Positions 1 through 17,900 are shown, counted from the stretch's first letter. The stretch: 64,000 nt of DNA from Phallusia mammillata (GCA_965637545.1 OZ281500.1:6510001-6574000), one strand, 5' to 3'. The notes: a model not told the origin generated them from the letters alone. Program-made: numbers and translations.

Positions 1-16
1 TTGTGTTATCTTGCAG

Positions 17-3000
17 CGCTTGCTCGAATACTGCAAGAGGAATTCGATCCGAATTTCGATCCAGTTTACCTTTGCCCATCCATACTCGTGGGATAATAAG
101 TACAATAAGGAAGGTTTGCAGAGTTTGTCCGAGAAGGGGATCAAGTTGAAGCCATTAAGGTACAATTTAGCAATTTCGGCTAAGTCAATAGACTCAATCT
201 GCGGAAGACTCGACACGGAGTAGCGGAATCCTTACTATTTATTGTTATTTTATTTTGAATCAAGAAACCATTATACCTGGGTCCTTTATTTTGTTTTATT
301 TTCAACAATTACAAGGAACAAACGTAGTGAAATGACAGTCAAATCCATGCTACAGGGAAAAGTAAACCTAGACGTAAGCTGTCGTGAGAAGCACAAATAA
401 TTTTCAATGAACAAGGTGTTGCTGGAACAGATTGTTTCTGGCAAAATATATGGCATATGATATGTCATGGCTCATATAAATGCAAAGATTTGTTCGAAAA
501 AGTTTGTTTCGTTTCATAACAAAAAAAATAATTTTTCGGTTCACCCTATTTTGGTGTCCATGTCGATGGTAACCCTGATATGTCTCCAACATCTTGACAA
601 GTTGAAATTGTCCACAAATATAAACCAAGAGGGTATTCCTTGTCACCTACACGACTACAATATACACCACACCTTCTGCAATCAAAACGTAACGTATTGC
701 ATTTATAGTCTTCAGCAAGGACTGAATCTAATGATCAACGATGTCCACGACACCCTGGAGACTTTCGACGAACTGCAAACGAGCAGAGGAACAATCCTTC
801 TCAATTATCACACACTGAAACGCGCGGCATCGAGACTGCGGGAAGCAGTGAATGTGAAAAGCGACTTCTATTTTCAGGACAACTTCGAACGTTTGAACGC
901 AATTTTAGGTAATGGTAAACTTGTGGTAAAAAATATAAATGCCATGTAGCTTGCAAATTAAGTTGGACCACAAAAAACAAGGGCTAGCCAGATCCACACT
1001 TTAGACCTCATTTCCCACCGGGTTTATGTTACCCGCTAGATAAGGTTTGCAGTAAACTGCCTGCAGTTTAAGTCAGTTTTTGAAAACCTGAGAAGCATAG
1101 AGGCAACCACAAAACTGCTGTGAAGTGGGAAACGTATTTATGCATGGTAGCGCAAAAACGTATTACCCAACAGTGGCCACAGGTGCGCCGCCAATAGCTA
1201 GTTAACCACTATAACGTTCCCGATATTTGTTTGTCACCGACAATGACTTAAGTACATACGTTATGGTTGAATTTTGTGCAGGTTACCAAAACCACCTACA
1301 CACACACACTTCAAGCTCAATTGAGGAAGCTACAAACTTTTCTTTGGCCACATACAGGGATTACTTTTTGCTACAAAACAGCGACGAGATTTGGGCAAAA
1401 TTAAAAGTCGACCTGACAAAGGACAGCGAAGGCGTAATGCGGGTGAGTATTTAGCTTTTTAACAAGTACTTACATAGGACTGTGGCTCACACATAACGAT
1501 AGACATGCAGTAACGAACCATTAAAACAAGTAATTTTTTCTCAAAGGAAGTAATTCACACAGTTACACAACAAACATGGCTTGTAAAACCTTTAGAAATA
1601 GATTTAAAAATCCAAAAACCTCAGCAATACAAATTTACTATGACAATATATTGTATATGCTCGAAACGGAAGGTTTGTGTTACAAAGCATGTTTACCATC
1701 CAGATGTTTTACCTTCCACATTTTTATAGGACCAAAAGCTATTCGAACGAATTTACAACGTACCAGGACCAAAATCGCCCAAGCATGGGAAGAACAATAC
1801 AGTGAAAGATCCACTGAACCCCAAAACTCATCTTCAACCGCTTGCTGACACGATCTGGCGTCTGGTGAGTGTTTGGTTGCGGTTTAGTAGAACATGAATA
1901 CAGATGATTGACATTTTGCTGACTACTGCTGTAATGTATTTATAACAACGCCTTTGAAATGTCCGTTTGCATTTTGTTTGTTGAGTTTAAACGCCTATTG
2001 AAACCATCTTGTAAGAAAATATTTTTTTAGGTGTCGAATTGGCATATTGTGGTTAATTTAACGTTGACAGAATTCCTGCTACAATTTAAAGCAACCTCAA
2101 AGGTCGACCAAAATAAAAGTAAACAACCCTACCCAGTGTAATTACACCTACCATTACAATATTTGACTTATATAAAGAGAAGCAATAAATGCGCTCTTTA
2201 CGATTTCGACAACGCATTAATAATGAATTCACAACACACTGTCGGTCCAGTGTGGTACAAAAATCGATCTTAACCTCGTTACTTTTAATCCAGATCGGCG
2301 ACAACGTCACCCTTGGCGAGCTCGCTAGTCAGGACGAGATAGTTGTTACCATCACTGCTGTTATGAGCGAATACCCGGACCGTATGAACTGGCACAACAC
2401 TGTACGGGCACTGCATCAAAAACTATCTGACAAAATTGAAGACGCCCATTTGGGAAAAGTAAGATATTAAAGTGCTATGTACTAGAATTACTTGGAGTTA
2501 GATATGGCCAAATACTTACAAACAGCTCATTGTTTACCCAGGTTTAACTTGTGATAAAATCTGTTGTAAAACAGAAAGATACACAATTCTTCCCCTGAAA
2601 TTTACATTGATTGCCCCTCTTTCCCACAGAATTTTTACGTATCTTCTTGCGTTAACCTTTTAATTCTTTCAAATCTTAGGTCCGCGTCGAAACACACATC
2701 CGTTACGCAATAAACCTCAAAGACAGCAACCAATCGCAACCGAGGGCAAAGGTCAACGGGGTCGCAAGCGGGGTCACAACTGAATGCATGCACGTGCAAG
2801 ATATCCTCTTCGACATGTTAGAAGACCTGGAAGACAATGTAAAGCACCTCGAAAGCGTGGACTTCGGAAGAGGAGTAAACCTTTGCGTGGACAAGACTTC
2901 TGTATCCTCGGCTCTCGGCGTCCTTAACAAAGCAATCAAGATACGAACAGGGGATGGAGAAATTCATTCAATGAACAGTGATTTTACTGACTGCTATGTC

Positions 3001-3018
3001 GAGAATTCTTTGGCATAA
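17..3018 (+). CDS. AID/APOBEC-like deaminase-fold gene A, 5'-partial, two tandem domains (D1 C-terminal half plus degenerate D2)
   Basis: Phase-consistent GT-AG exons 17-159, 709-908, 1282-1442, 1730-1864, 2294-2458, 2680-3018 (TAA). D1 reads RLLEYCKRNSIRISIQFTFAHPYSWDNKYNKEGLQSLSEKGIKLKPLSLQQGL, matching the alpha3-beta4-loop7-alpha4-beta5 pattern of AID/APOBEC (xIFxARLY...EGLRxLxxAGVxIxxM). D2 reads EEATNFSLATYRDYFL..EIWAKLKVDL..THLQPLAD..VTITAVMSEYPDRMNWHNTVRAL..VRVETHIRY..TECMHVQDILFDML. Confidence 0.7.
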
Positions 3019-3533
3019 ATACGCAGTTGGCGATAACGTATTTGTCGCCTACTTAAAATTAGAAGTCTCGTCTTGCTACCTAAACAGAATCACGCTCGCA
3101 CACACTTACGAAGTACATTTAAATTGCAACTCATGCGTTCGGTTAATGCAGTACTGTATTGCTATGTTATGTCTTTTGGTAGATCATTGAACGTGCATTC
3201 TAAAAACAACATTACAAGACCATATTATACAAGAATTGGACCAAAACAGTGCTCTTTTTGTTTTTCGTAACATTTGCAGTACAGTTTGACCATAAAACCG
3301 TAGTATATCCGAACAATGATTATGTGTCACAATTTTAATGTCCTCACACGTATTTTGCAAATACACAATATTGGACGTTTCGACAAACTTGTACATATTG
3401 CTTAACAAAACAGCGCTCAGCGCCACACAACGCAATATCCCGATTGCTAAATAATGCATAGGAAATTTGACCAATTTCTACCCCACTACTTTAATTAAAT
3501 GTTTTGAGCTATTTGTCAGCAAGCCGATCAGTC

Positions 3534-5510
3534 ATGAAAGTCTATTGCTGTCAACAGCACTGGGAAAACATGTTAAAGGTAGTTCAACCAGCCACAATTA
3601 GCCTGCATGAATATCTGGAATTCTTTCTCGAGACCCGAACTAGTGATGCAAATGCAAGCAGGATCATTGTTAAGTGCGACCTTGTGTATGACGGTCAGCT
3701 CAGGTATAAGAAAACATGATAAACAGCAAGCGGACCTAGGCTATTTTTCGAGTAATACGTTTATTAGCGTGTTTTTGTCACAGGTGCCGTTGCTTAACAG
3801 TATGATACTCTTTGGTGGGAAGGCCATTACCAAACAAATTTCATTGACTTCAAATTAGTAAACTATAACTTCATAAATCAATCAAGATATTTTAGGAGTT
3901 TAACCATTATCAATATGCAGCACAACATATAGCCAGAAAGCACATTTCGACGCCACTACAAATTACTTGTCGGTTTAATCAGGTTTAGCAAAGTCCTGCG
4001 AGGTGGAGAGAACAAGGGCGAAAACGCTGAACTTCAAGTGGCAAAAGATTTGAAGTCTATACTTACTGACGACCGGCCTTGGTCGAAAAAGGAATGCTCA
4101 GTAAACGTAAGTGGAGAGACCAAAATAATGCACTAAAACCGCAAAGGTAAAGAGCGGTTGTCAAAATAAATTTACTAGAGGAAAAAAATTCTGTGCGCAA
4201 AACAAAAAAATATTTTGTGATTGCAAAATAAAGACACTAGAACAACCTTAAAAACAAAAGTTCTGTCCGATGATTAAAGCGAAAAAAGCCTACTCACTCA
4301 TTTTCTCTACAATATACTTGTCTGTTTTTTTAGATAATCGTCAACAAAAGTCTCAGCATCATTAGCGCCGAGCAGTTCACGCAAGTTCATCGCCAGTTGC
4401 GAGCAAGGGTCGGAGCTGGCGCAGTGTTTAGGGTGTCGTACGCCCATCCCTGTCACTATGTTAACCAACGAGCTTTGACCAACCTCCATAGGGCTGGGAT
4501 TAAGCTGCAAGTGCTCGCGGTGGAAGATATACTCAGGGAAGCGATCAAAGATTGTCTCAAGCAAGTTTGTTTTTATTTTGCAAAAGCATTGTAGCCCACT
4601 ATTAGGACGAACGAAGTATTAAGTAAGAAAAGTGAAAAAGCTTTAGGTAACAAGAAAGGTAAAAACAGAGAAAAGAGTAAATAAAAATACACGCCAATGC
4701 ACTTGGCGTTACCTTTTTTGGTAAATCGGGTTGAGAGCACAAATCGGATGGAGTGTATCAATTTCGTTTCAATTTCATAGCGTTTATTTTATCATGGTAA
4801 TTTCATCGTAACAATTTCATCGCAGCAATTACATCGTGACAACACAGCAAGTTTGTCCCTTGTGATTATATCTTTGTGGTAATTTTAACCGGAAAGACAA
4901 ATTGACAGAGAGTATCAATTGACAACTCAAACTAAAAAAACCTGTCCAGATTCCTTTTACATTGTAAAAGTAAAATTTACAACATCATATGTTAATGCTA
5001 TCAGACGAAATCGGTTAATCAGGATAAAACGCAGTTGGAATCCCGACTAACCGGTTCGGGGCTTTTCACTAGCACGAAGTTCGTTCTTCATGTCCAACAA
5101 CAACGTTTTGCCTTAACTACACCTTAGTATCGTATAACGAGTCCAATCCATGTGCTAATAATAACGCGGCAACATAGCATCGAACTTAAATTAACTTTAC
5201 GAAATCTCACAAAAACAGCTCATGACTGGTAAAACTACGTACAATATCAATACTGTAATACATTTCCAGTGACGTGCAAGGCCTTGCCTATTTGTCGTTG
5301 CAAAAACTACGAAACGTATCAGTCACGTGCGACCAAACGACAATCAACGCAGCTCATTTTCTGCTACTGAATAGCTTCCAAGTAAACGCGACTTCCCTGG
5401 CCGAACACGTGATCAAGGGTAACTACGAACGAGATCAGTATGTGCTTGGACTTCGACAGGAAATGCGGAAGGTGGATCAAATCAAGTTAATCAACTTAGA
5501 ATGCCTTTGA
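3534..5510 (+). CDS. AID/APOBEC-like pseudo-deaminase gene B (single domain D3, about 273 aa)
   Basis: Exons 3534-3703, 3983-4106, 4334-4564, 5023-5078, 5270-5510 join in frame. Translation ATISLHEYLEFFL..RIIVKCDLVY..GENAELQVAKDL..IIVNKSLSIISAEQF..VFRVSYAHPCHYVNQRALTNLHRAGIKLQVLAVEDIL gives the full element order of the deaminase fold, with NAE in place of HAE and SLSIIS in place of SPCxxC. The ATG lies 14 nt after a 3' splice-type site at 3519. Confidence 0.72.
4799..4840. repeat. Three degenerate tandem copies of a 14-mer (AATTTCATCGTAAC) in an intron of gene B
   Basis: aatttcatcgtaac-aatttcatcgcagc-aattacatcgtgac. Confidence 0.6.
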
Positions 5511-6404
5511 AACTGCGTAACTGAGTGAAAATTTCTAAAGTCCTATACTAAATTAACCTCAAGACAAATCTTCTCAAAGTATAACTTTATCACGAGTCTA
5601 TACCGTATATAAACTAGCAATAGCCTATACTGTACAATGGATCGAGTTAATTATATAAAAAACAAGTCCAAAACAAGCTACACGTTAAGATTGAACACCT
5701 TCTAGAAACGTTTATGTACGTAAAATCCACAAATAACAAGACCCAGTTTGGCAACAATTTTTCAGCTTTTAAGAAGCAACAGCAAAACGAGATCACCGAA
5801 AGTGACCAGGAAAAATAAAGTCTCGTTTGATGCCAGTGAGGAAGATCAAAAAGACGAAATCATTACATCAGTCAGTCAAACACCCAGCAACAAAATGTCG
5901 AGTAATGTCAGCATAAGTAAAAAGTTTTCATCGATTTTATCAACTTTGTTTCACAGCGGTGCTGACATCTGGACCTACCGGAGCAACGACAAGTGAGGCT
6001 CTACATATGACCAAGTATTTGCTAAAGGCAAAGGAAACTAATAGACCGGAGATTTGCCTCGATTTTCAAACGTATCTGCAACTGTACTTGGCCTGTGGAG
6101 GTTAGTTCTTTATGTTCAGCTCCGAGATCAATTAAGTTACCTATTAATCCGGATAATGGCTAAAGTTTTATTGCAAGTTTAATCCAAACCGTGTAGCCTA
6201 CCATTAGTTAGAATAATATATCATTTATTTGCACATTCTGGTTCAAAACAAGAAATAAGATTGGAAAACTGGGTTTATCCATTATTGACTCAGATAACAA
6301 AAAAATGCCCGCTAGCTTTGCCTTTAAAGTTGATGGATCAACTTAAATACTTTGTCACTTATGTTAAGTGCCTTTCGAGAAAATAAAACGGACTATGTTT
6401 GCAG

Positions 6405-8111
6405 GAGTAACAAAAAATACAAAACCAAAGACCGTAGAAGGCAAGTGGACGATCGAATGTAGCGTAAGTAACTCTACATCAATGCTGCGATTCTCTGGCT
6501 TAACGTACAAGGGAGGCTGCGATGGAGACAACTCAAATATCAACAGCCCTGAACTGATAAAAGAAATCCAGGCTGCGTTGAAACAATACGGGGGTAAACC
6601 AAGAAAAACATGATCAAAATCTAAATAAACTGACACCAAACACTTGGATATGATAAGCTTTTGCGAATCATGGGTTATTTTTAGGCAAGCGTGAAATACA
6701 CATGAATGTGGAAACGATAGTGGCATGTATCCCGGACAGAAACAACAGCGTCAGGCAGATCACCGCTTTAGCTGAAAAGCTTAACAAGGATTTGAGAGGA
6801 AAGACAACAGTGTCGGTGTGGTAAGTCAATAATACTGTATTGTTGTAAAACTCTAACTTGAAATGCCCTAGATGTGGAGTGATTTCGTTTCTTTTTGCAT
6901 TGTAAAAACAAAGTTTTATGAAGTACTAAATTGGTTTACATCCCTAGTTGTAATACTACAACCTAAAATACGTGGTTAGGTGTGCTGGAGTGGAAAACAT
7001 GAACGTACCGACCCAACAAGCTATCAAGCGCATGTTTCAGTCGGACTCAAGTGGTCAAGTTGCCATAGAGAAACACCTGCGTGTTATGCATATCATTGAC
7101 ATATTAAACTTCATGGTAGACGACATACTGGTAAGAAAAAGCTACTTATTGTAAAAACCCACATGTTTTGAAACCAAGAATATTTTTTCTAGACCATGTT
7201 TACACACTACCACATGGCAGCGCATGAGCGTGGCTTGTCGATAAAGATTCGACCCGCGGAATTGACAACTGCTGTGCATTTGCTGCGTTCCGCTATGCAC
7301 GTTAGCAGCGATGAAAAGCCTTATTTAAAACATAGGTAAGTATAAAGAATATCTAGAACAGAGGTGGGCAACCTTTGTTACTGTGGGGCCAAATACAATA
7401 GCCAAAATTCGATCGCGGGCCGCACCTGTGTAAAACACAAGGTGATTTCACTTTGTTGCTTACCAAATATGCTTAACTACAAGTGGCATTCGCATTTGAT
7501 GCTAGCCACATATTGCCAGGTCGCATAAAAATAGCATCGGGCGCATTAATCTGCTCAAAAATATATAACAGTTGCTGCACTCGTTTGCCAGGACATTTGA
7601 AATCCAAGGGTCTCTGTGGGCCGCACAACCTTTAATCAAGGGCCGCATTTGGCCCGCGGGCTGCAGGTTGCCCACCCCTGATCTAGAAGATGTCTTGACG
7701 TTGGACTGTTTGAAAATAAACCTAATACGTCCGAATTAAAAAGAGGTAACCTGGTTAACTGTAATAACAACGCAACCAAGGCGTATTAGCCATTATAAAT
7801 CTCACTCAATTCACGTACAATTTAGACAACATTCATTTTAGCCTATATAGCTTAAAGGCATATCTTTCAAAATCCTGTACAGAAGGAAGTGAAGGTCCAG
7901 TTTAAGAAAGTAAAAAAACATGGTCTTTTAAGTATACCACTAGAAACACATGAAGACCCGATTTTTAAGCTAATTTGATTGCAGATTGGAAGATCACAAC
8001 GCACACGAACGACTTCGTGATTCTTACCATCAAAACAAAAGCGCTCTGCTCGCCAAGAACCTGCAGCCAACCGCACAAGAACGGCATCCCAGTGACAATA
8101 AGCTTGTTTAA
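6405..8111 (+). CDS. AID/APOBEC-like pseudo-deaminase gene C (domain D4); 5' exons unresolved, may start near 5895
   Basis: In-frame exons 6405-6593, 6685-6820, 6980-7130, 7193-7335, 7985-8111 (TAA). KWTIECSV..NSPELIKEI..VETIVACIPDRNNSVRQITALAEKL..LRVMHIIDILNFMVDDIL..ERGLSIKIRPAELTTAVHLLRSAMHV..AHERL aligns by eye with D2 (SEYPDRMNWHNTVRALHQKL; TECMHVQDILFDMLEDL; GRGVNLCVDKTSVSSALGVLNKAIKI). Candidate upstream exons 5895-5916, 5957 onward and 6294 onward could not be joined in a single consistent phase. Confidence 0.62.
7359..7680. mobile_element. Non-autonomous hAT-type MITE (322 bp) in the last intron of gene C
   Basis: TIRs CAGAGGTGGGCAACC / GGTTGCCCACCCCTG (14/15 match); perfect 8-bp TSD ATCTAGAA at 7351-7358 and 7681-7688; internal GGGCCGC subterminal motifs. 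Confidence 0.9.
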
Positions 8112-8301: not shown

Positions 8302-11300
8302 CTGGAATGTTCTTCTGTCTTTTCGCTTAAGTCCTGTCGGAGAGATTCTACGATAGAGTTGGCTTCTTTCAGCTTGTCCACATAAGACAACAACTCAGAT
8401 TTCATATGGCTGTAAAATACCATTGGTTGTGAAGATGTATAAAAATACAGAAATAAAATAGCTCTTTTGCGGACAACCCACGTTTGTTTTGCTTCACATT
8501 CTTCGTGGTTCGATTTGAAGCTTTGAAATTCTTGAAGTAATTTGTCTTTTTTCTTTTCGACAGATTTTCTGAAAGGGAAGGTTGAAATGATGTTTTCTTG
8601 CCAAGACGTTATTTCCTAACCGAATGGTAAAATTTTACGAATTTGAATGCCTGATACTTACAATTAAAGAAATATTTGTACAGTGCTAGGTATATACTAA
8701 CTTTTCAACAACGTGGTTCACAACTACATCCGAAAGTTTTGTGATTTTCGTGTTGGCATTCTCTACTCTCTCGACTTGTGTATCGAGTGCATCGTTGACG
8801 TTCTGTTAAGAAATTTAAAATGCCAATAATTTTACTTTTTACTCATTGACTTTAGACTGATTTGTATAAAACCAATTTATGTGTCAAGGCGTGCTAAATC
8901 TTACAAGCGTTGAGAATTATTGTTACCTTTAATTTATTCTCGTAATCGCTTATAATTGTAGCAAGTGCGGCATTTAAAGTCTCGGCGAACTTCGATTCGT
9001 ACGATTTTAGTTTGGCATCCGAACAATGCAAATCATCTTGTAATCTCGCGTTATCAGCTCGCAACTTGTCCGTCACACCTGAAAACGTGAAGTAATTACC
9101 AGATAATTTTAAGTACGAGTAAAATTGTAGTGAAAGTTGATGTTATACCTTGAAGTGCACTGATTTGTTGGCCTACGTCATCACTGTGCTTCTCAATGTC
9201 CTGATTTAGTTCCTCTAAAAAACAATTTATACGAAATATTACTTACAACACTGCTGTTTTTGTTTTCTTTTGCAAAAACAGCGGAAATTGGATCCGTGTT
9301 TAAAGCTTGTGACAGCAATGGGTTTCACATTGTTTTTCTTTGTGGTAATTTTGTGGTGGTACTAAATACCACATGATACCGCATCTTGCAAGATTCGAGT
9401 GGGGGTGAGGGTTTGTAATTAAAATACCACTATGTGACTACAATTTGGTCTCATTTACCTTTGTTGGGACTGATATTCTTACATTCCATAAACCATGCAT
9501 CAAATGGTAACGTCCGGTATTTAGAACCACTCCGAATTTTGTACTCACCCAAAACAGAGTTTGCCTGCTGCAAAGCTGCTATCCTTGCTTTTGACGCTGT
9601 TACATCAGTTTCAACACTTTGCATTCTGATGCGGTCTCTTTCCAGTTGCTGGAACAGTTCAAAACATAAATGAATGTAAAAACTATATTTTTAGTTAGGA
9701 AACATATCATAACCAAACCAGACACAAACCAAACTAAGAATCGCTTTGCTATTCATCGCAGTTCTACACTGTTGCATCATATGCATACACCATCATCCAT
9801 AATTGACATTTTGATATGCACATGTATTCGTTATGTCCATGCAACTGCCTATATCCTATCCTAGCATCAATATGGCATGGTTGTTTGATAAAAAAACTAT
9901 GCCAACAGGACAGCATGCAATTGCTAAGTTAACCATTACCCTTTCGAAACTGTTGGATAATGAGCCCTTATTAGCATGTTTTAACATCAAGCAGCATTAA
10001 CCATCAAAATTATACAAAGCGTTGGTCTCACTTGGCCAATGTTTAACATAAGCATATAGAGTGGCAACTGCTAATAGTTAATATTATGCCACTAATGTAC
10101 TACCCAAAAAAATGCCATAATCCAATAAACATTTTAGGATAAAAACCTGAGTCAGAGTAGAATTTTTCCCTCTGAAGGAAACCCATAATTTTGTTGCAAA
10201 AAACTGTTGCAAAGATATGTATTTACCTGCTTATATGTTGTTAGCTGAGATTTGGAACGCTTTAAATCTAGTTCCAGGTCATTATTTCTCTTCTCCTTCA
10301 CCTCCTGTGACAGATTTATGTTTTGGTATTGTATATGCCATGTTTGTGACTTTGCGCTTCAAAATGTGCATGTTACAAAGTACAAACCTTGGTCATCAGA
10401 AAATCATTCTTCTTTTGCAGAGCAGCAATGTTTTTTTCAGCAACTTTTATTTCGCTTCCAAGTGAAAGTTTGTCTTTTGATAGTGAAGTGACTCTGCCCT
10501 CCAATCTTGCTACTTCTTGACGACTGATTTTTAAATCTTTTTCACGGTCACTGCATTGTTGCAAAAGCTGTCGAATCTAAAGAAACACCACAACTGTGTT
10601 GTTTATGTATAGTAAACAAATCAATATGGTACTGCAGCTAAAAAAATATGGCATATAAGTTTGCTACAGTTTATATACATGTGTCAGTCACTTATAAACG
10701 AGATGCATGTGTATAAAATGGACAGAGCAAAACATAAATGTGTGCCAGCACATCAGTGTGAAAGTTGGCATACAAAAGTTCACCTCTTTTTCATAAGCTT
10801 GTTTTTCCTTGTTTACACCTTTTGGGGATGCTTTGATAGTGGTTGCTTTAGATTCTCTCTTGCTATTCTGTAACAAATCATGCAACAGAGCATTGGATTA
10901 ACCACTGTTTCTGCATAATTGAACTTTTTTTACATTTTCCTAAAAAATGAATCTTGATATCAAACATATTGACAAAGACACCCCTAACATTCTAATTTGT
11001 TGGTAAGAAATCATGATGGTAACAAGGTAAAGTTACATTGAGTGATGCAGGCCCATTGAAATTGAGTTTCTTCTTTGATGAGGTGATACTTTCTGGGGCC
11101 ACAAACACATCAGAATTCCCATCAGTTGATGTTGTTGATTCCGGTTTAAATCTGTCAGTGTAGTTTTCAAACTTTAGCACTCCAAATGTTTTTTCCTTCT
11201 CAGAAAGTGTATATTGACCAGGGGCTGGACCGGAACCTAAAATATACACAAGCAATTGAAGGTTCATTTAGACACAAGAAATTGTAGAACATAGGATTAG

Positions 11301-11651
11301 TTGTAGTCAAAAAAGTATTTAGTGGTGAATCAAAAATCACTTAACAAATATAATATATATATATACATAGGTTTAAACAGGGCTTGACAAAACCAATGCA
11401 ATTTGTCGATTGCAACAGCAATTTGATCCTTTAAAAGGCCGTGAGGACTATGATGCCAGGTTTAAAACAAGTGATGCCATGAAACGGGAATCTGAACACA
11501 GGGTACTCATTTAATGCTGCTCACAGTGGTCATCAATGTGATCAGGAAAATTGTGTATTTGTTGAAAATCTCTAAAATTGAAGGAATCATTTTAATCACC
11601 CTTACCTGCATTATCATTGAATCTTTTAATAGCAGCTTTTGGAAAAGACAT
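8302..11651 (-). CDS. HMMR: Hyaluronan-mediated motility receptor / RHAMM, N-terminal about 403 aa (11 exons)
   Basis: Begins MSFPKAAIKRFNDNAGSGPAPGQY (human HMMR from memory: MSFPKAPLKRFNDPSGCAPSPGAY), then EKEIRQLLQQCSDREKDL..LQKKNDFLMTK and coiled coil. Exons 11651-11606, 11236-11037, 10867-10784, 10576-10388, 10304-10227, 9648-9549, 9214-9149, 9078-8927, 8802-8702, 8568-8482, 8409-8302 are all phase-consistent. The last exon either uses a phase-2 donor at 8301 or reads through to a stop at 8235-8237. Confidence 0.9.
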
Positions 11652-12943
11652 TGTAAAACCAAATGTCAGCAGTTTTAAAATATGATGCTGCAAAATAGGT
11701 TTCGGTTCTATATGGTTAACATGCTTGACTGGATGATGCAATCAAAGAATTTAATCAAACTAAAGCATTAATAATCGATATGCTTATGTTAGGTTGGTCA
11801 ACATTCTTTGTAAAATAATCTGGCCCCAACCCATGTTTTTGTTCGAACCCTAATAACCCTTTACTTGTTTTTCTTTTTTGCTGAACTAAACTCCTGCTTC
11901 CATTGATTCAGCATTTCAGTATCTTACAAATTTAATTCATACGCTATATATAGTGTATACAAACTATATGCAATGTATAGAAACTAGGCGTCTTGTACCA
12001 ACGCGACCAGGGCAAACCGCAGAAAAAGGGTTCCAGCAAACACACAAAACATCGCATATATTTTGTTAAAAAACAGGTAAAAAGGTGAAATTTCACACCT
12101 GTACAGCTGTACTAAGTCGAGCATGCAGAATGGTGGGGGTAAGTGATAAAAAACACTATAATTTAATCTCAGATACCCCTTATGGTCTTAATATTCTTGA
12201 GGGTGGTTTGCGTATTCCTGAAACTGCGTAGTTTGCGTAGATTGTGTATTTTAGAGTAGCCCTCTTGTAAATACTTCCTTAGCCAAAATGCAATTTACTC
12301 GTTAAATGCGTCAATGTAAATCATTTACATGCAAAGTCATAGCACGTCTTATGACACTAATGGAAAAAGTGTATACTGTCCAATACAAAAAATCGACCTA
12401 TAAAGTCTAATCAAAAACTTAAAATCCAAACTTTAGTCCAAAACTTTAAACTCTAAAGCTATACTAGTTTCATTCATTGCTGACTGCAACAGCTTCTCAG
12501 TTGCATGAATCGGCATTTTAACGTCATGGCAAATTTGAATAATAGAGTGCAGTCATACAAAATCTTTTAAGACAACATTTGTAAGCAAAAAACAGTAAAA
12601 AAAACGCTAGTGTAATAAAGAGTCTCAATCAGCAACCGCAACAAACGAATTATATTTTTGAAGAATTCCCGCTGAACGTGAAAACTTGTTTTTCGAATCA
12701 GTGTGAAACTATAATTTTTTTTTCGGGGAGTGGTTGACAAAAATGTCCAACAAATGTCACATTTAATTTTTGTTTCAATTTAAATAGTTCAGTAGCATGC
12801 ATAACTTCGCATACAAAAATAGACTTTTCAATTGTATTTCTATGCTGCTGTTATAATACTACGCTACTTATTGTGGTTTTGGTCCATGTTTTAAGTAGGT
12901 TGAGTTTGTTTCGCTTGGTGAAAGAACACATAGCTACACAACG

Positions 12944-13375: not shown

Positions 13376-14209
13376 ACACAACGGCTGGGCAACGTTAAAA
13401 CGTTAAAATTGTTAGATCAGTACCAATCGCGCTGTAGCTCCACTGTAATACGAAGCGTTGTATGGTGGGAGTTAACCAGAGATTTAAATCCATCTAAATT
13501 TCTAAAGATTTGAGCCTCACTTTCACGTATATAATATAAAAATGCTCTGTCTCACAACCAGGTAAGCAAATACACATCGCCATACTTCTAATTTTGGACA
13601 AACCAAAACGTTTCTTTCAGGTTTATTGGCAAGGTGTCTGCCAGCACACATGCAAAAAGAAGTACAAGGCGAAACATATATGATTATCTAAAGCAAAAAG
13701 CAAGTCTCCGTTCACTTGCCAACGGAACAACGAGGCGCGAGTTTCCCGCCAAACAAAATGCAACCTGCACCGATACCGACGATCACGAGGTGCTTTGAAA
13801 ATGCGAAAAAATGCAATTAAATAAACAGAAAATTCGTGCGAATCACAGTGGCACAAAAATCGGTAAAAACACGTCAGAGAATCGGCAAAAACAAATCAGT
13901 TACGTCAGCAAAACAACTGCGGAGCTATGGCAACGAGCTTAAACAGTACGAGGAAGAAAAATAAACAAAAAACAGCGCGGTCAGCGTTTAGCAGCTGAGG
14001 CACCCTCACAGTGGAGAACACAGAGGGCGTCGTCCTACTTCTGTGAGCGGCGAGTTTGGCCGGTAAATATATAGGCACTTAATCGTTCAAAATTTTGTTT
14101 TGGAAACTACAACAATACAAGTGGAAGTAATTGTGTTTTCATTCCACGTTGAAACGAACTAAACTTTGCATGTGTTTGCAATAGGCGCGGGTATGAGAAA
14201 AAGCTGCGG

Positions 14210-14904
14210 TTATGTCCTTCTCCTTCTTACAAATTTAACATTCCTTCCGGAATCTGCAAGTTCAGGATAAAGGTCCGCATCGAACGCAAATTCGACCGTC
14301 CACGTGGAAAGGGAACCACGCGAGAGAATCTCCTGTCTCTGTCTCTCATTCCACATTGTTTTTAGACCTTGTTTGATCTTAGCCTTTTCACGTGACCACG
14401 CATCCACCTCTGCCCTTCGTAACGCTTCACTTGCCACGCGATCACGCTCCACTTCTTCCGAGGAGTAGTCACTGTGACGTGATGACGTGCCGGAATTGAC
14501 GTAAAGAATTGTTATGACCGCATAACCGGTTTCAACGCGGATTTGTTTTTGATTCGTCGAGACCACGATTGGAGCATCACTACCACCAGGTGTCGCAGCA
14601 GTGCTACCACGACGTTGGGGATTTCCACCGTCAAGAATTCGGTCGTGGCCCGAAACAAGCCGTAGAGTTTGCTTGTCTTTTTCGAAAGAGTCAGGCGACT
14701 TGGCGAGGAAGACATTCGGTTTCCCTTCCAAGGTCAAGCTCATGGCAGCCGATGCTGAGTCAGCGTCTTTACCGAATATGACGTCAGCACCCTTAATGAT
14801 GCCACTAAGACGCTTTACGTCATCGGTCGCCGAGTTAAGCACTTGTGTAGCGATGCTACCACGGTCCACAATAAGCACGAGGCCTTGTGCAAACAGGGTT
14901 CCGT
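14210..14904 (-). CDS. TENM: Teneurin terminal exon: Tox-GHH / TCAP region
   Basis: EALRRAEVDAWSREK..WNERQRQEILSRG..LYPELADSGRNVKFVRRRRT-stop. Confidence 0.93.
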
Positions 14905-17900
14905 CTGAAACAAACAAATTTTAATGTTGAGAACAGCTCTATACCAATAGTGTTTCTTAAACAACGTAAACTATTATAACACTGATCAGACGTATATAAT
15001 TCATATACCTGGAATTACATCTTTTTCGTTTTGCATTTGACGAGTGGGCACAAGTACTGAAGGTGTAACTGTCTGGAGACTCATGTATGCCCTCAAGTGT
15101 TGAGAAAGCTGGCACTCAACGCTTGACTTGTCCTAAACCAAATGCTTTGTTAAACAAAAGGTAAAAAGCTTGCTATTACACTTGCTTAAACAGGCATTAC
15201 AACTTAAAGATTAAAATTTATTACATTTAAAACATGTAACTTATTTCGACAGAATACAACGTACCTTTTGTCTTGAGGCAATCTGTGGGTCTGGAGCAAC
15301 GTTCTGAAGCTTAAACCCGAGTGCAGTCAACCAAGACGAGGTATCGGTCATGTGATTAAACACTGGCACAGGGTTTACCGGGTCGACAACTTGGAAAGCA
15401 GTAAAAACAACGAGTTCTGTTCCAAGGTCTTTCAGTCGGTAAACTCCCGATGACGTCAGCTGACCCACTATTGCGTCATAATCAACTGCTTGCTGTAGCT
15501 GCCCTGTACTTTTTTCACGACTGGAGCTTTGGCCAAGGACCGAGTCCGGTGTGATCTTGGGCGCCGATAGTGGCGATAAGGCTTCGCGATTTGCAAACCG
15601 AACTAGGCCGGTAGTGACATCATATATGCCCCCGCGGAAGCCAATGGCGACAAAGAGGGAGGGTTCAGAATCATGCAGAACTTGTCCGAATGGTGAATAC
15701 CTAAAACAACATTTTTGCATTAAGTTTCTTTGCAGAAGTTTCGACCTGTTGCCTGAACATGTCAACCGGACAATCGGATTTGCTCAGTATGATATTACAC
15801 TTACTTTATTCGCTTCACCATCTTCATTCCGCTGTTAAAAACTCCGATCGGTGACCCCATATGGTCACAAACGATTGACCAGACCTGACCGTCGCTTCGT
15901 TCCATAGCGAACAAGTGACCTTCAACGTCATATCGGTACGTTGTGATGCGATCTGCGAATGCAATGTGCGTTAAAACCTGTTTCTGAATCAAATGCTTTA
16001 ACGTTGAAATTGTTGGACAGGGTACAGATTTTTACTTACGGGAAGTTGCATTAAATGTGTGAGTAAGGCGATCCGGTTTCGCAAGATCAGCGTATAGGAA
16101 TCGAATCACTTCCCCTGTACGGACATTCACTCTTGTTGTGAGGCGACCGAAACCATCATACGCATATTTGATCTGTTGATTAAAAAAATGAAATAAATTT
16201 TGAAATACAAACTGACTGTACTAGGGATTTTACGTTGTTTGTTGATTAATTACCTCATAAGCGTCGTCTAATCTGTATGCGGTGGTCAGATGGCCCATGC
16301 TGTCGTATTCGAATACCTCGTTGCCTCTTTGCTGCAGGAAACCGTCCTTGTCAAAGCGGTACTGCAAGTCTCCGCAAGACGTCAATCTATTACAAAACCA
16401 TTCCTCAATATTTTGCAAGTTAAAACAATATACATTGGCAAGACATTGTAAAAACGCTACAAATTGATATTCTGTACTATTAACGTTTCCTTAAAGGATT
16501 CTGTTTTATGCAATTGATCACCGAAGTATCTTCACCTTCCATATTTGTCGTATCTCAGTGTCGTTAACACCCCGTTTTCTTCAATCTTTGAAAGCTTGCC
16601 ATCAGCGTCGTAGGTGTAACGCCACTTAGTGGTTCCATCAATGGCACACGACTTGAGTTCGCCTTTGCTTGTGTAGCTATACCCGACAGTAGTCACGTTG
16701 TCATCCAGCCCACTGACTGTAAGCAAGTCAATTCGTCCAGCCTGGTCATAGCTGATTCCAAGGTTATAAATTGGAGCCCTAATGAAAGAAATAAGCAGTT
16801 TGAAATATAGCCTAGGAACGATAAAATAAATGCTGTAATTTCCTGCAATTGTTACAACCAATGCGTTTTACCCATAAAGTGGATGATGAAAATATAGTTA
16901 TGCCTGATTAACGTACCGAAACATGTAAAGGCTGACACCAGTGATCCTGCCACTGTTTTGGGACTGCTTAGAAAGAGTTACAGTGTCTGTGCTGATTGTG
17001 TAGATCTGGTCGAAGTCGATGACCTTATACGGTCCGAATGTGGTTAACTTGCCCGAAACATCGTCGTAACTGTAGAACTCCTGCGGCAGTCTAGTTCCGT
17101 TTACCTTTACCTAGAGAACAAAACGCAATGTAAAAATGTGACCAAACTTCCGTAGAACTTGTATATATGTAATAAAATCGTTGCAATAACTGCATTTTTT
17201 ATGAGTGCCTAATTTTAGTCAAATACCACTTTGATCTATCAGAGCTTTATGTAACATTTACCTGAATACTGTCCAAACGCAAATTCACGTCGTTAGTGTA
17301 ATCAAACACGGCAAGTAGGCCGCCATCGGTCGATGACGTTACTGTATGACGTTGCACCAGAGGTCCATTCCTGTGAAAGCGTAGCGTACATCGGTCAGTG
17401 CTCACGGACACGATTTCTCCCGATTGAGGATCGCGCAGCATACTGGTGCGTGTGCCGTCATGCAGAACCTCGGTCATGTGACCGTGCGCGTCATAGCGAA
17501 ATATGCTTTTGCGTTTCTCACCTATAAGAAAAACCATAAGTCAAGAAGGTTGCACAAATTTTTACATTGTTAAAGTCGTTGTTTACCAGGATAGTAAACA
17601 GCCAGGGGACTTCCATGGTCATTGTTGTCCAGCACCAACATGTCGACGCCATCGGCGCCGATAAATGTCGTCCGAACGAAACCAATGCCGATACGTCGGT
17701 CAAGCGTGTATGTTAGTCCTGATGGCAGGGTCAGTTTGTGTAAGTTGCTGCTTCCGTCGTATGCAAAAGTAAAGTGGCCCGTGGAATGGGGTGGAATCAT
17801 GCGCGCCATCTAGTAAAAAATATAAGTAAGGTTACTTTTTGGATGCACACTGGTAAAGACTTTAATGTGGCAGTTATAATTCGAAATATTCTAACCAAAC

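Follow-up and report, generated by a model that had tools for sequence, protein, structure and literature searches.

Within a 64,000-nucleotide stretch of the genome of the ascidian Phallusia mammillata (GCA_965637545.1 OZ281500.1:6510001-6574000; the window in what follows), we find the C-terminal half of one two-domain gene (gene 1, domains D1 and D2) and most of a second two-domain gene (gene 2, domains D3 and D4). We consider it probable that these tandem paralogues derive from AID/APOBEC-like deaminases (AADs) and have no zinc site, that they lie antisense in an intron of HMMR, and that they are maintained as proteins which likely serve as non-catalytic binders or adaptors. Each protein would comprise two AID/APOBEC-derived domains, each followed by a tail module made of a hairpin and helices.

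Loss of the zinc ligands

The H-x-E motif expected at the start of helix 2 in AADs is absent from D2, D3 and D4 in the window and from the orthologues of D1. The P-C-x-x-C motif is likewise absent, and its place is taken by P-D-R-M-N in D2, L-S-I-I-S in D3, P-D-R-N-N in D4 and P-S-N-x-G in the D1 orthologues. An earlier note, made from this sequence alone, had pointed to six motifs at these sites, and all of them are present in the frames that it gave: THLQP (1826-1840) and SEYPDRMNW (2366-2392) in D2, ENAEL (4020-4034) and NKSLSIIS (4343-4366) in D3, and NSPEL (6542-6556) and ACIPDRNNS (6723-6749) in D4. The placement of the P-C-x-x-C equivalents holds up: hhalign sets Y-P-D-R-M-G of D2 on S-P-S-N-V-G of D1 and S-P/L-S-I-I-S of D3 on the same D1 site, and the equivalent sites of Clavelina D1 and D2 fall at the junction of strand 3 and helix 3 in AlphaFold models.

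At this strand-3/helix-3 site, D1 reads S-P-S-N-x-G in Ciona intestinalis, Clavelina lepadiformis and Styela clava (hereafter by genus), within an invariant S-R-S-P-S-N-x-G, and S-P-N-N-V-G in the marine contig L005. D1 thus has no zinc ligands in four of the four species with a readable motif region. The D3 site is S-P-S-I-I-S in Ciona and Styela and S-L-S-I-I-S in this genome and in a tunicate represented by metagenome contigs (the JGI tunicate); in the codons AGT CTC AGC ATC ATT AGC found here, a single base change would turn any of the Ser codons into Cys and the Leu codon into Pro. The D2 site is P-D-R-x-N/G/E in this genome, Clavelina, Ciona and locus L004, P-D-D-L-G in L005 and T-G-R-T-G in Styela, and the D4 site is P-D-K/R-x-N in this genome, Ciona and Styela. 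At the H-x-E site, D3 has N-A-E inside G-G-E-N-K-G-E-N-A-E-L-Q, which is invariant in four species, and D4 has S-P-E in this genome, M-T-E in Ciona and N-P-Q in Styela. The orthologues of D1 carry A-D-P, L-D-P or similar there, with no His or Glu, and D2 has H-L-Q in this genome, H-L-M in Ciona (manual alignment) and S-L-V in Clavelina (tblastn). The placement of this second site is solid for D3 but loose for D2, whose His is not conserved (Ser in Clavelina) and whose register on helix 2 could be off by a few residues. No domain of the cluster has a His/Cys/Cys zinc site, and all four appear to be dead. The known mechanism of cytidine deaminases requires a zinc-activated water, and because of this we infer that the domains are non-deaminating; without a metal to activate water, deamination by that mechanism would not take place.

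The residues that are left give a small chance that one or more of the domains are still enzymes with unconventional ligands, such as the Glu of N-A-E and the H-P-C-H of D3, the Asp at the first Cys position of D2 and D4, or the invariant E-C-x-H of D2. Both N-A-E and H-P-C-H-Y are invariant in four species, and D3 is the most constrained of the domains, with about 0.2 non-synonymous substitutions per site (dN); moreover, neomorphic metal sites have been described in other AAD clades (Krishnan et al.; PMC5889660). Against such an activity, no complete conserved triad of His, Cys or Asp could be located close to the pocket; Asn and Ser bind zinc poorly; in Styela, Gly replaces the Asp of D2, and N, G and E all occur at the second position. 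For D3 in particular it is quite doubtful that the retained catalytic Glu and the invariant H-P-C-H-Y by the old pocket form a relocated metal or ligand site, used for new chemistry or for reading a base or a modification. If it were true, the only classical AADs in the sister group of vertebrates would have been re-purposed rather than simply inactivated.

Deaminase ancestry and fold

Homology searches were run exon by exon, and folds were predicted only for the Clavelina orthologue of D1 and D2. D1 gives the clearest signal. Its exon at 17-159 matches the Pfam APOBEC4 model with an E-value of 3.5e-10 and 40.4 bits (cut-off 27.2) and also matches the Pfam models APOBEC_N, NAD1, SNAD4 and APOBEC3 over the same stretch; its alignment with APOBEC3F in the PDB is weak. 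The AlphaFold model of Clavelina D1 (predicted local distance difference test, pLDDT, 81; predicted template modelling score, pTM, 0.78) has the canonical order of elements, followed by a hairpin and two helices in the region of the tail exon. Foldseek aligned it with APOBEC3F, 3C, 3G and AID at E-values of about 1e-8, with target template modelling (TM) scores of 0.6-0.75 (APOBEC3F 0.69-0.75).

For D2 and D4, the alternative that they are an unrelated alpha/beta domain resembling a deaminase has some support in the models, though we regard it as unlikely. D2 and D4 have no Pfam or PDB sequence match, and the Clavelina D2 model has a pLDDT of 64, TM-scores of only 0.27-0.41 and VIA Z-scores of 5-7; it lacks helix 4, which is replaced by a disordered Ser/Pro-rich loop, and the proteins Top7 and RadC score alongside APOBECs for it. 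Nevertheless, hhalign aligns D2 with D1 over 120 columns (probability 90%, E-value 1.4e-6) with the motif site in register, and the two domains share an N-terminal motif, S-L-x-x-Y-x-x-F-L-L-x-N, as well as the tail module. The order of elements in the D2 model is canonical, and its top 50 Foldseek matches are all APOBEC3 or AID (best E-value 8e-4). In all species, the stretch between strands 4 and 5 of D2 (window 2700-2760; residues 420-445 of P0018), where helix 4 and loop 7 are expected, is a variable, low-confidence loop rich in Ser, Pro and Asn.

The D3 exon alignment matches D1 by hhalign (probability 93.6%, E-value 2e-7) and D2 at a probability of only 18%; the 41-residue D3 exon with the H-x-E site gave no hhalign match to D1, and neither Pfam nor a PDB profile search yielded a significant match for the D3 alignment. 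D4 matches D2 in three collinear exons, with E-values of 1.4e-3 (onto P-D-R-M-G), 3e-4 and 4e-5 (the tail), and gave no hhalign match to D1, cross pairs being weak. Of the curated family models, the gathering score of APOBEC4 is passed by D1, and is not passed by D2, D3 or D4 exons taken singly. An ESM Atlas feature search gave no usable match. MAFFT alignments tiled from several exons misplaced short ones and were used only for clearly aligned blocks.

On these matches, D3 and D4 are most probably deaminase-derived. The APOBEC fold, a five-stranded sheet with the order a1-b1-b2-a2-b3-a3-b4-a4-b5-a5, is predicted in full for D1 and, in the same order without a4, for D2. The view that the deaminase fold has been kept therefore stands, through the models of the Clavelina orthologue, as a clear APOBEC fold for D1 and a degenerate one for D2; for D3 and D4 it is supported by homology only.

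Two paralogous two-domain genes

D3 is evidently a paralogue of D1, and D4 of D2, and from this pairing it follows that the cluster would have arisen by duplication of a two-domain gene. The earlier note had the ligands lost in each domain in a different way. Instead, D2 and D4 share P-D-R/K-x-N/G, and D3 shares S-P/L-S with D1. Since the motifs are common within each pair, ligand loss would predate the gene duplication and would not represent three independent losses. We therefore distinguish two inherited loss patterns, which on present comparisons are older than both the gene duplication and the split of the ascidian orders.

D1 and D2 form one polypeptide and are not the separate subunits that had been supposed when the locus was read as three proteins, A, B and C. 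The exons of the two domains are linked, and in the proteins of Ciona, Clavelina and Styela the region of the first D2 exon runs on from D1. This bears on the proposal of one active enzyme accompanied by several inactive subunits, in which catalysis would fall to D1, with D2-D4 serving as its inactive partners, decoys or regulators. In its favour, the D1 half-domain alone passes a Pfam deaminase threshold, and the motif region of D1 in this genome falls outside the window and is not directly readable. The orthologues speak against it: D1 reads S-P-S-N-x-G in three named species, including Clavelina, which is 79-80% identical to the D1 exon of the window, and S-P-N-N-V-G in L005, and there is no His or Glu at the H-x-E site in any of them. 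Together with the single chain of D1 and D2 and the finding that nothing at the locus resembles an active partner, this makes an active D1 very unlikely.

A Cys codon at window positions 2-4 was considered as the second zinc Cys of D1 and rejected. Positions 1-16 are the non-coding 3' end of an intron on the plus strand, with a ttgcag acceptor; in four relatives an intron ending in ag, with stops upstream, lies directly before the homologous codon, and the Ciona protein and its genomic sequence part ways at the same boundary. The window therefore includes none of the D1 zinc motif.

Conservation, synteny and probable transcription

Orthologues with both D1 and D2 are annotated in Ciona (LOC100182559, 496 amino acids), Styela (LOC120332373, 572 amino acids) and Clavelina (LOC143444357, 526 amino acids). 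The longest exon (2680-3015), searched exhaustively against 1.84 billion representatives, gave nine matches, of which eight are tunicate-like proteins or fragments, with E-values down to 1e-27; the ninth, the sushi-repeat protein P0008, was discarded as a low-complexity false positive. Using tblastn with each window exon, we recovered collinear D1, D2, D3 and D4 exons in Ciona and Styela, those of D1-D2 in an ENA tunicate contig (L004) as well as in Clavelina, and those of D3 in the JGI tunicate, for which the locus sequence stops where D4 begins. By identity in the D1 exon, Clavelina is the closest of the named species, and the JGI tunicate reaches 80% in the D3 exon. When the Ciona protein or a mixed D1/D3 alignment served as query, word searches returned only the Ciona and Clavelina D1-D2 proteins and no D3-D4 product; a word search with the D3 exon gave no match in its length band.

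Between orthologous exons, protein identity is lowest for D4 compared with Styela (26%) and highest for D3 exon 1 compared with the JGI tunicate (82%); dN ranges from 0.2 to 0.9, D3 being the most and D4 the least constrained domain. Synonymous differences (as a proportion, pS) reach 0.75 or more in almost all pairs, the nearest relative included; since these differences are saturated, the ratio of dN to synonymous substitutions per site (dS) is not computable. At the DNA level only the D3 core exon aligns, and introns do not. Under this divergence, the collinear orthologous exons and the same substitutions in Ciona, Styela, Clavelina and other tunicates bear out the suggestion that these are maintained genes and not pseudogenes, and purifying selection has, by this evidence, kept the proteins since the ligands were lost. 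That they are decaying pseudogenes, with open frames surviving by chance, is extremely unlikely: every canonical catalytic residue is gone, D4 and parts of D2 are weakly conserved with dN up to 0.9, one donor is not GT and no D3-D4 gene turned up within 10 kilobases (kb) downstream of D1-D2 in Clavelina, but 16 exons are open with compatible phases, orthologous exons have been kept across ascidian orders despite saturated dS and unalignable introns, the D3 core blocks are invariant, the non-GT donor is a consensus GCAAGT at an orthologous position, and RefSeq models exist in three species.

The position of the genes is conserved as well. HMMR harbours the D1-D2 gene in antisense orientation in Ciona, Clavelina and Styela alike, and in the window the 5' exons of HMMR, identified by tblastn to the annotated Ciona and Clavelina HMMR regions, lie on the minus strand at 8897-11741, antisense to the deaminase-like genes; with these exons on the minus strand at about 8.9-11.7 kb, the nested arrangement is therefore conserved. 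A second gene directly downstream is annotated in Ciona (423 amino acids) and in Styela (580 amino acids). The annotated Ciona gene begins at position 14683 of its locus sequence (L001), inside the D3 core exon, and further upstream, at 14034-14464, are conserved D3 exons that include a conserved start Met; this gene's public model looks truncated at its N-terminus. Adjoining HMMR, an open frame at window 14210-14917 on the minus strand encodes a Tox-GHH domain (E-value 3e-18) with a weak Teneurin_ABD match and represents the C-terminal end of a teneurin gene.

L005 (JGI 3300019016, 1-1535), from an environmental sample, holds a D1-D2 orthologue from which the introns are gone except for one of 47 nucleotides, at the position of the window intron 1865-2293. 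The contig looks like a transcript and the sample would then be a metatranscriptome.

Exon structure of the two genes

The window has no runs of N, and all exons of both genes lie on its plus strand. Gene 1 enters with the D1 exon at 17-159, which covers helix 3 to strand 5 of the AID/APOBEC-like domain, and its donor at 159/160 joins in phase to 709. The D1 tail-module exon (709-908) is 42-58% identical to those of four tunicates and has an in-phase link to 1282. The first D2 exon (1282-1442) encodes the linker, helix 1 and strand 1, with the motif F-S-L-x-T-Y-R-D-Y-F-L-L-Q-N, and shows 51-70% identity to four tunicates. The second (1730-1864), in phase 0 with GT/AG boundaries, holds THLQP at the presumed H-x-E site; only Clavelina aligns here, at 38%. 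The third (2294-2458) holds S-E-Y-P-D-R-M-N-W, of which E-Y-P-D-R is kept in Clavelina, Ciona and L004. The last exon of gene 1 (2680-3018) comprises strand 4, the disordered loop, strand 5, the tail module and a TAA stop, with 46-59% identity to its orthologues. The junction 2458/2680 was taken from reading the sequence and lies outside the link test, the link anchor containing a stop codon.

Gene 2 opens with D3 exon 1 (3570-3703), whose start codon and sequence, M-L-K-V-V-Q-P-A-T-I-S-L, are kept in Ciona (about 57% identity), Styela (about 45%) and the JGI tunicate (82%). D3 exon 2 (3983-4106) contains the invariant block with N-A-E at 4023-4031 and has in-phase junctions. D3 exon 3 (4334-4560), 69% identical to Ciona, 68% to Styela and 80% to the JGI tunicate, carries S-L-S-I-I-S (4349-4366) and the block from A-H-P-C-H-Y to R-A-G-I-K-L. 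The donor that follows, at 4561, is GC (AA|GCAAGT; intron 4561-5269); Ciona, Styela and the JGI tunicate use GT there, in the same phase. The D3 tail-module exon (5270-5471) is kept through ...Q-E-M-R-K in these three, and its end at 5471 is linked to 5766. A Ser/Lys-rich linker exon between D3 and D4 (5766-5901) keeps L-R-S-N-S-K-x-R in Ciona and the JGI tunicate and ends in the donor TCGA|GTAATG, whose phase matches that in Ciona. The cross-species comparison led us to prefer 5471 and 5901 to donors at 5418 and 5992.

D4 begins with an exon candidate at 5957-6100, with matching phases and a helix-1 motif, C-L-D-F-Q-T-Y-L-Q-L-Y-L; on visual inspection, collinear open frames of Ciona and Styela contain a similar motif. 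The following exon (6405-6593), with NSPEL at the presumed H-x-E site, is 28-33% identical to Styela and Ciona and has a weak GT donor. Junctions 5901/5957 and 6100/6405 are based on matching phases, splice signals and the collinear Ciona and Styela motifs, not on the link test. The exon at 6685-6820 holds I-P-D-R-N-N (6729-6746) at the P-C-x-x-C site, with P-D-K/R-x-N kept in Ciona and Styela (pairwise z 6.3). Strand 4 to helix 5, with M-H-I-I-D-I-L, are encoded at 6980-7130, a collinear match to E-C-M-H-x-Q-D-I-L of D2, and the D4 tail-module exon (7193-7335) matches the tail of D2; both have orthologous exons in Ciona and Styela. The gene runs on past 7335, and its 3' end beyond this position was not found. 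The description of intact frames with clean splice sites and no stops thus applies to the open frames and phases of the 16 exons, but not to the GC donor at 4561 and the weak GT donor of 6405-6593. At window 7352-7687, 17 nucleotides past the donor of the D4 tail exon, lies an element of about 336 nucleotides that resembles a miniature inverted-repeat transposable element; its terminal inverted repeats are 23 nucleotides long and 91% complementary, and it is the sole copy in the window.

Discussion

We propose that loss of the zinc sites took place in an ancestral gene with two domains and preceded both the gene duplication and the split of the ascidian orders, and that purifying selection has held the products ever since. 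The proteins would then most likely act as non-catalytic binders or adaptors. In the D1/D3 type the full APOBEC topology may have been retained. The invariant D3 block from A-H-P-C-H-Y through R-A-G-I-K-L, which we take from the D1 model and known APOBEC structures to be loop 7 and helix 4, suggests a conserved ligand surface, and this surface could have been retained for a single-stranded nucleic acid or a partner protein. The D2/D4 type would be more degenerate, helix 4 of D2 having apparently been exchanged for the disordered Ser/Pro-rich loop.

Several points weigh against this proposal. The D1 motif region of this genome is outside the window, and the D1 site is read from orthologues. The D2 model is of moderate confidence, with VIA Z-scores in a range that the tool itself calls common, and neither Pfam nor PDB sequence searches gave a match for D2, D3 or D4 exons taken singly. 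A D3-D4 orthologue was not detected in the 10 kb downstream of D1-D2 in Clavelina (L002 14915-24915) or in the 6.8 kb downstream in L004 (10333-17134); gene 2 may be dispensable, and lost or displaced in some lineages. Finally, the binding function is one that we infer purely. A role as decoy or nucleic-acid binder is a reasonable proposition all the same.

The core idea, that inactive AADs of tunicates are possible binders or decoys, is already published. Urochordate AADs, including that of Ciona intestinalis, were 'predicted to be catalytically inactive' and a role as decoy or nucleic-acid binder was proposed for them (Krishnan et al. 2018, PNAS, PMC5889660). The proteins described there (Pfam Inv-AAD, PF18785) belong to the same lineage as ours and apparently to the same gene, with catalytic residues lost in both. 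The Ciona orthologue LOC100182559 carries a precomputed Pfam Inv-AAD match, and the features that define this clade, orthology to the Ciona AAD and loss of catalytic residues, are seen here in the collinear exons, the HMMR synteny and the same substitutions. The main text of PMC5889660 has one sentence on Ciona and mentions no second degenerate domain per protein, second paralogous gene, nesting in HMMR or degree of conservation across ascidian orders. A full-text literature search returned no work on these proteins after Krishnan et al. 2018. The present analysis adds that each protein has a second degenerate domain and that a second, paralogous gene exists, along with the HMMR-nested synteny, the two inherited substitution patterns and the strong conservation of D3.

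Among Pfam families, APOBEC4 (PF18775) is the best match of the C-terminal half of D1 (40 bits here, 81 bits in Ciona), through a short model of 74 positions that covers only helix 3 to strand 5. The hallmark of APOBEC4 is a long metal-binding insert that it shares with the cnidarian-algal clade, and tunicate AADs are placed in another clade (PMC5889660). The stretch of D1 where such an insert would fall lies outside the window.

The double-domain APOBEC3 proteins (A3G, A3F and A3B) likewise have two tandem deaminase folds in one chain, and APOBEC3 proteins are the best fold matches. Their non-catalytic N-terminal domain binds nucleic acid and partners, keeps HxE/PCxxC and binds zinc, while activity resides in the C-terminal domain. 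The tandem arrangement is confirmed here, but both domains of each protein are without ligands and catalytic residues are found in none; in addition, the duplication is independent and tunicate-specific, and each domain has an extra tail module. ADAT3 (Tad3) is another deaminase-fold protein that has been retained in a non-catalytic capacity. It retains its zinc ligands, lacks only the catalytic Glu and forms a heterodimer with its active paralogue ADAT2; by contrast, no active paralogue is evident here. Both systems keep their zinc sites and are functional analogies only.

Tunicates are the closest living relatives of vertebrates, in which AID/APOBEC enzymes drive antibody diversification and antiviral mutation. 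A conserved two-domain gene pair of zinc-less copies at a fixed position in tunicates could therefore sharpen the timing of when mutator activity became important in chordates. For annotation, D2 and D4 would be unrecognised degenerate deaminase domains. More generally, these genes may provide a natural example of a deaminase fold that has been kept for a non-enzymatic job.

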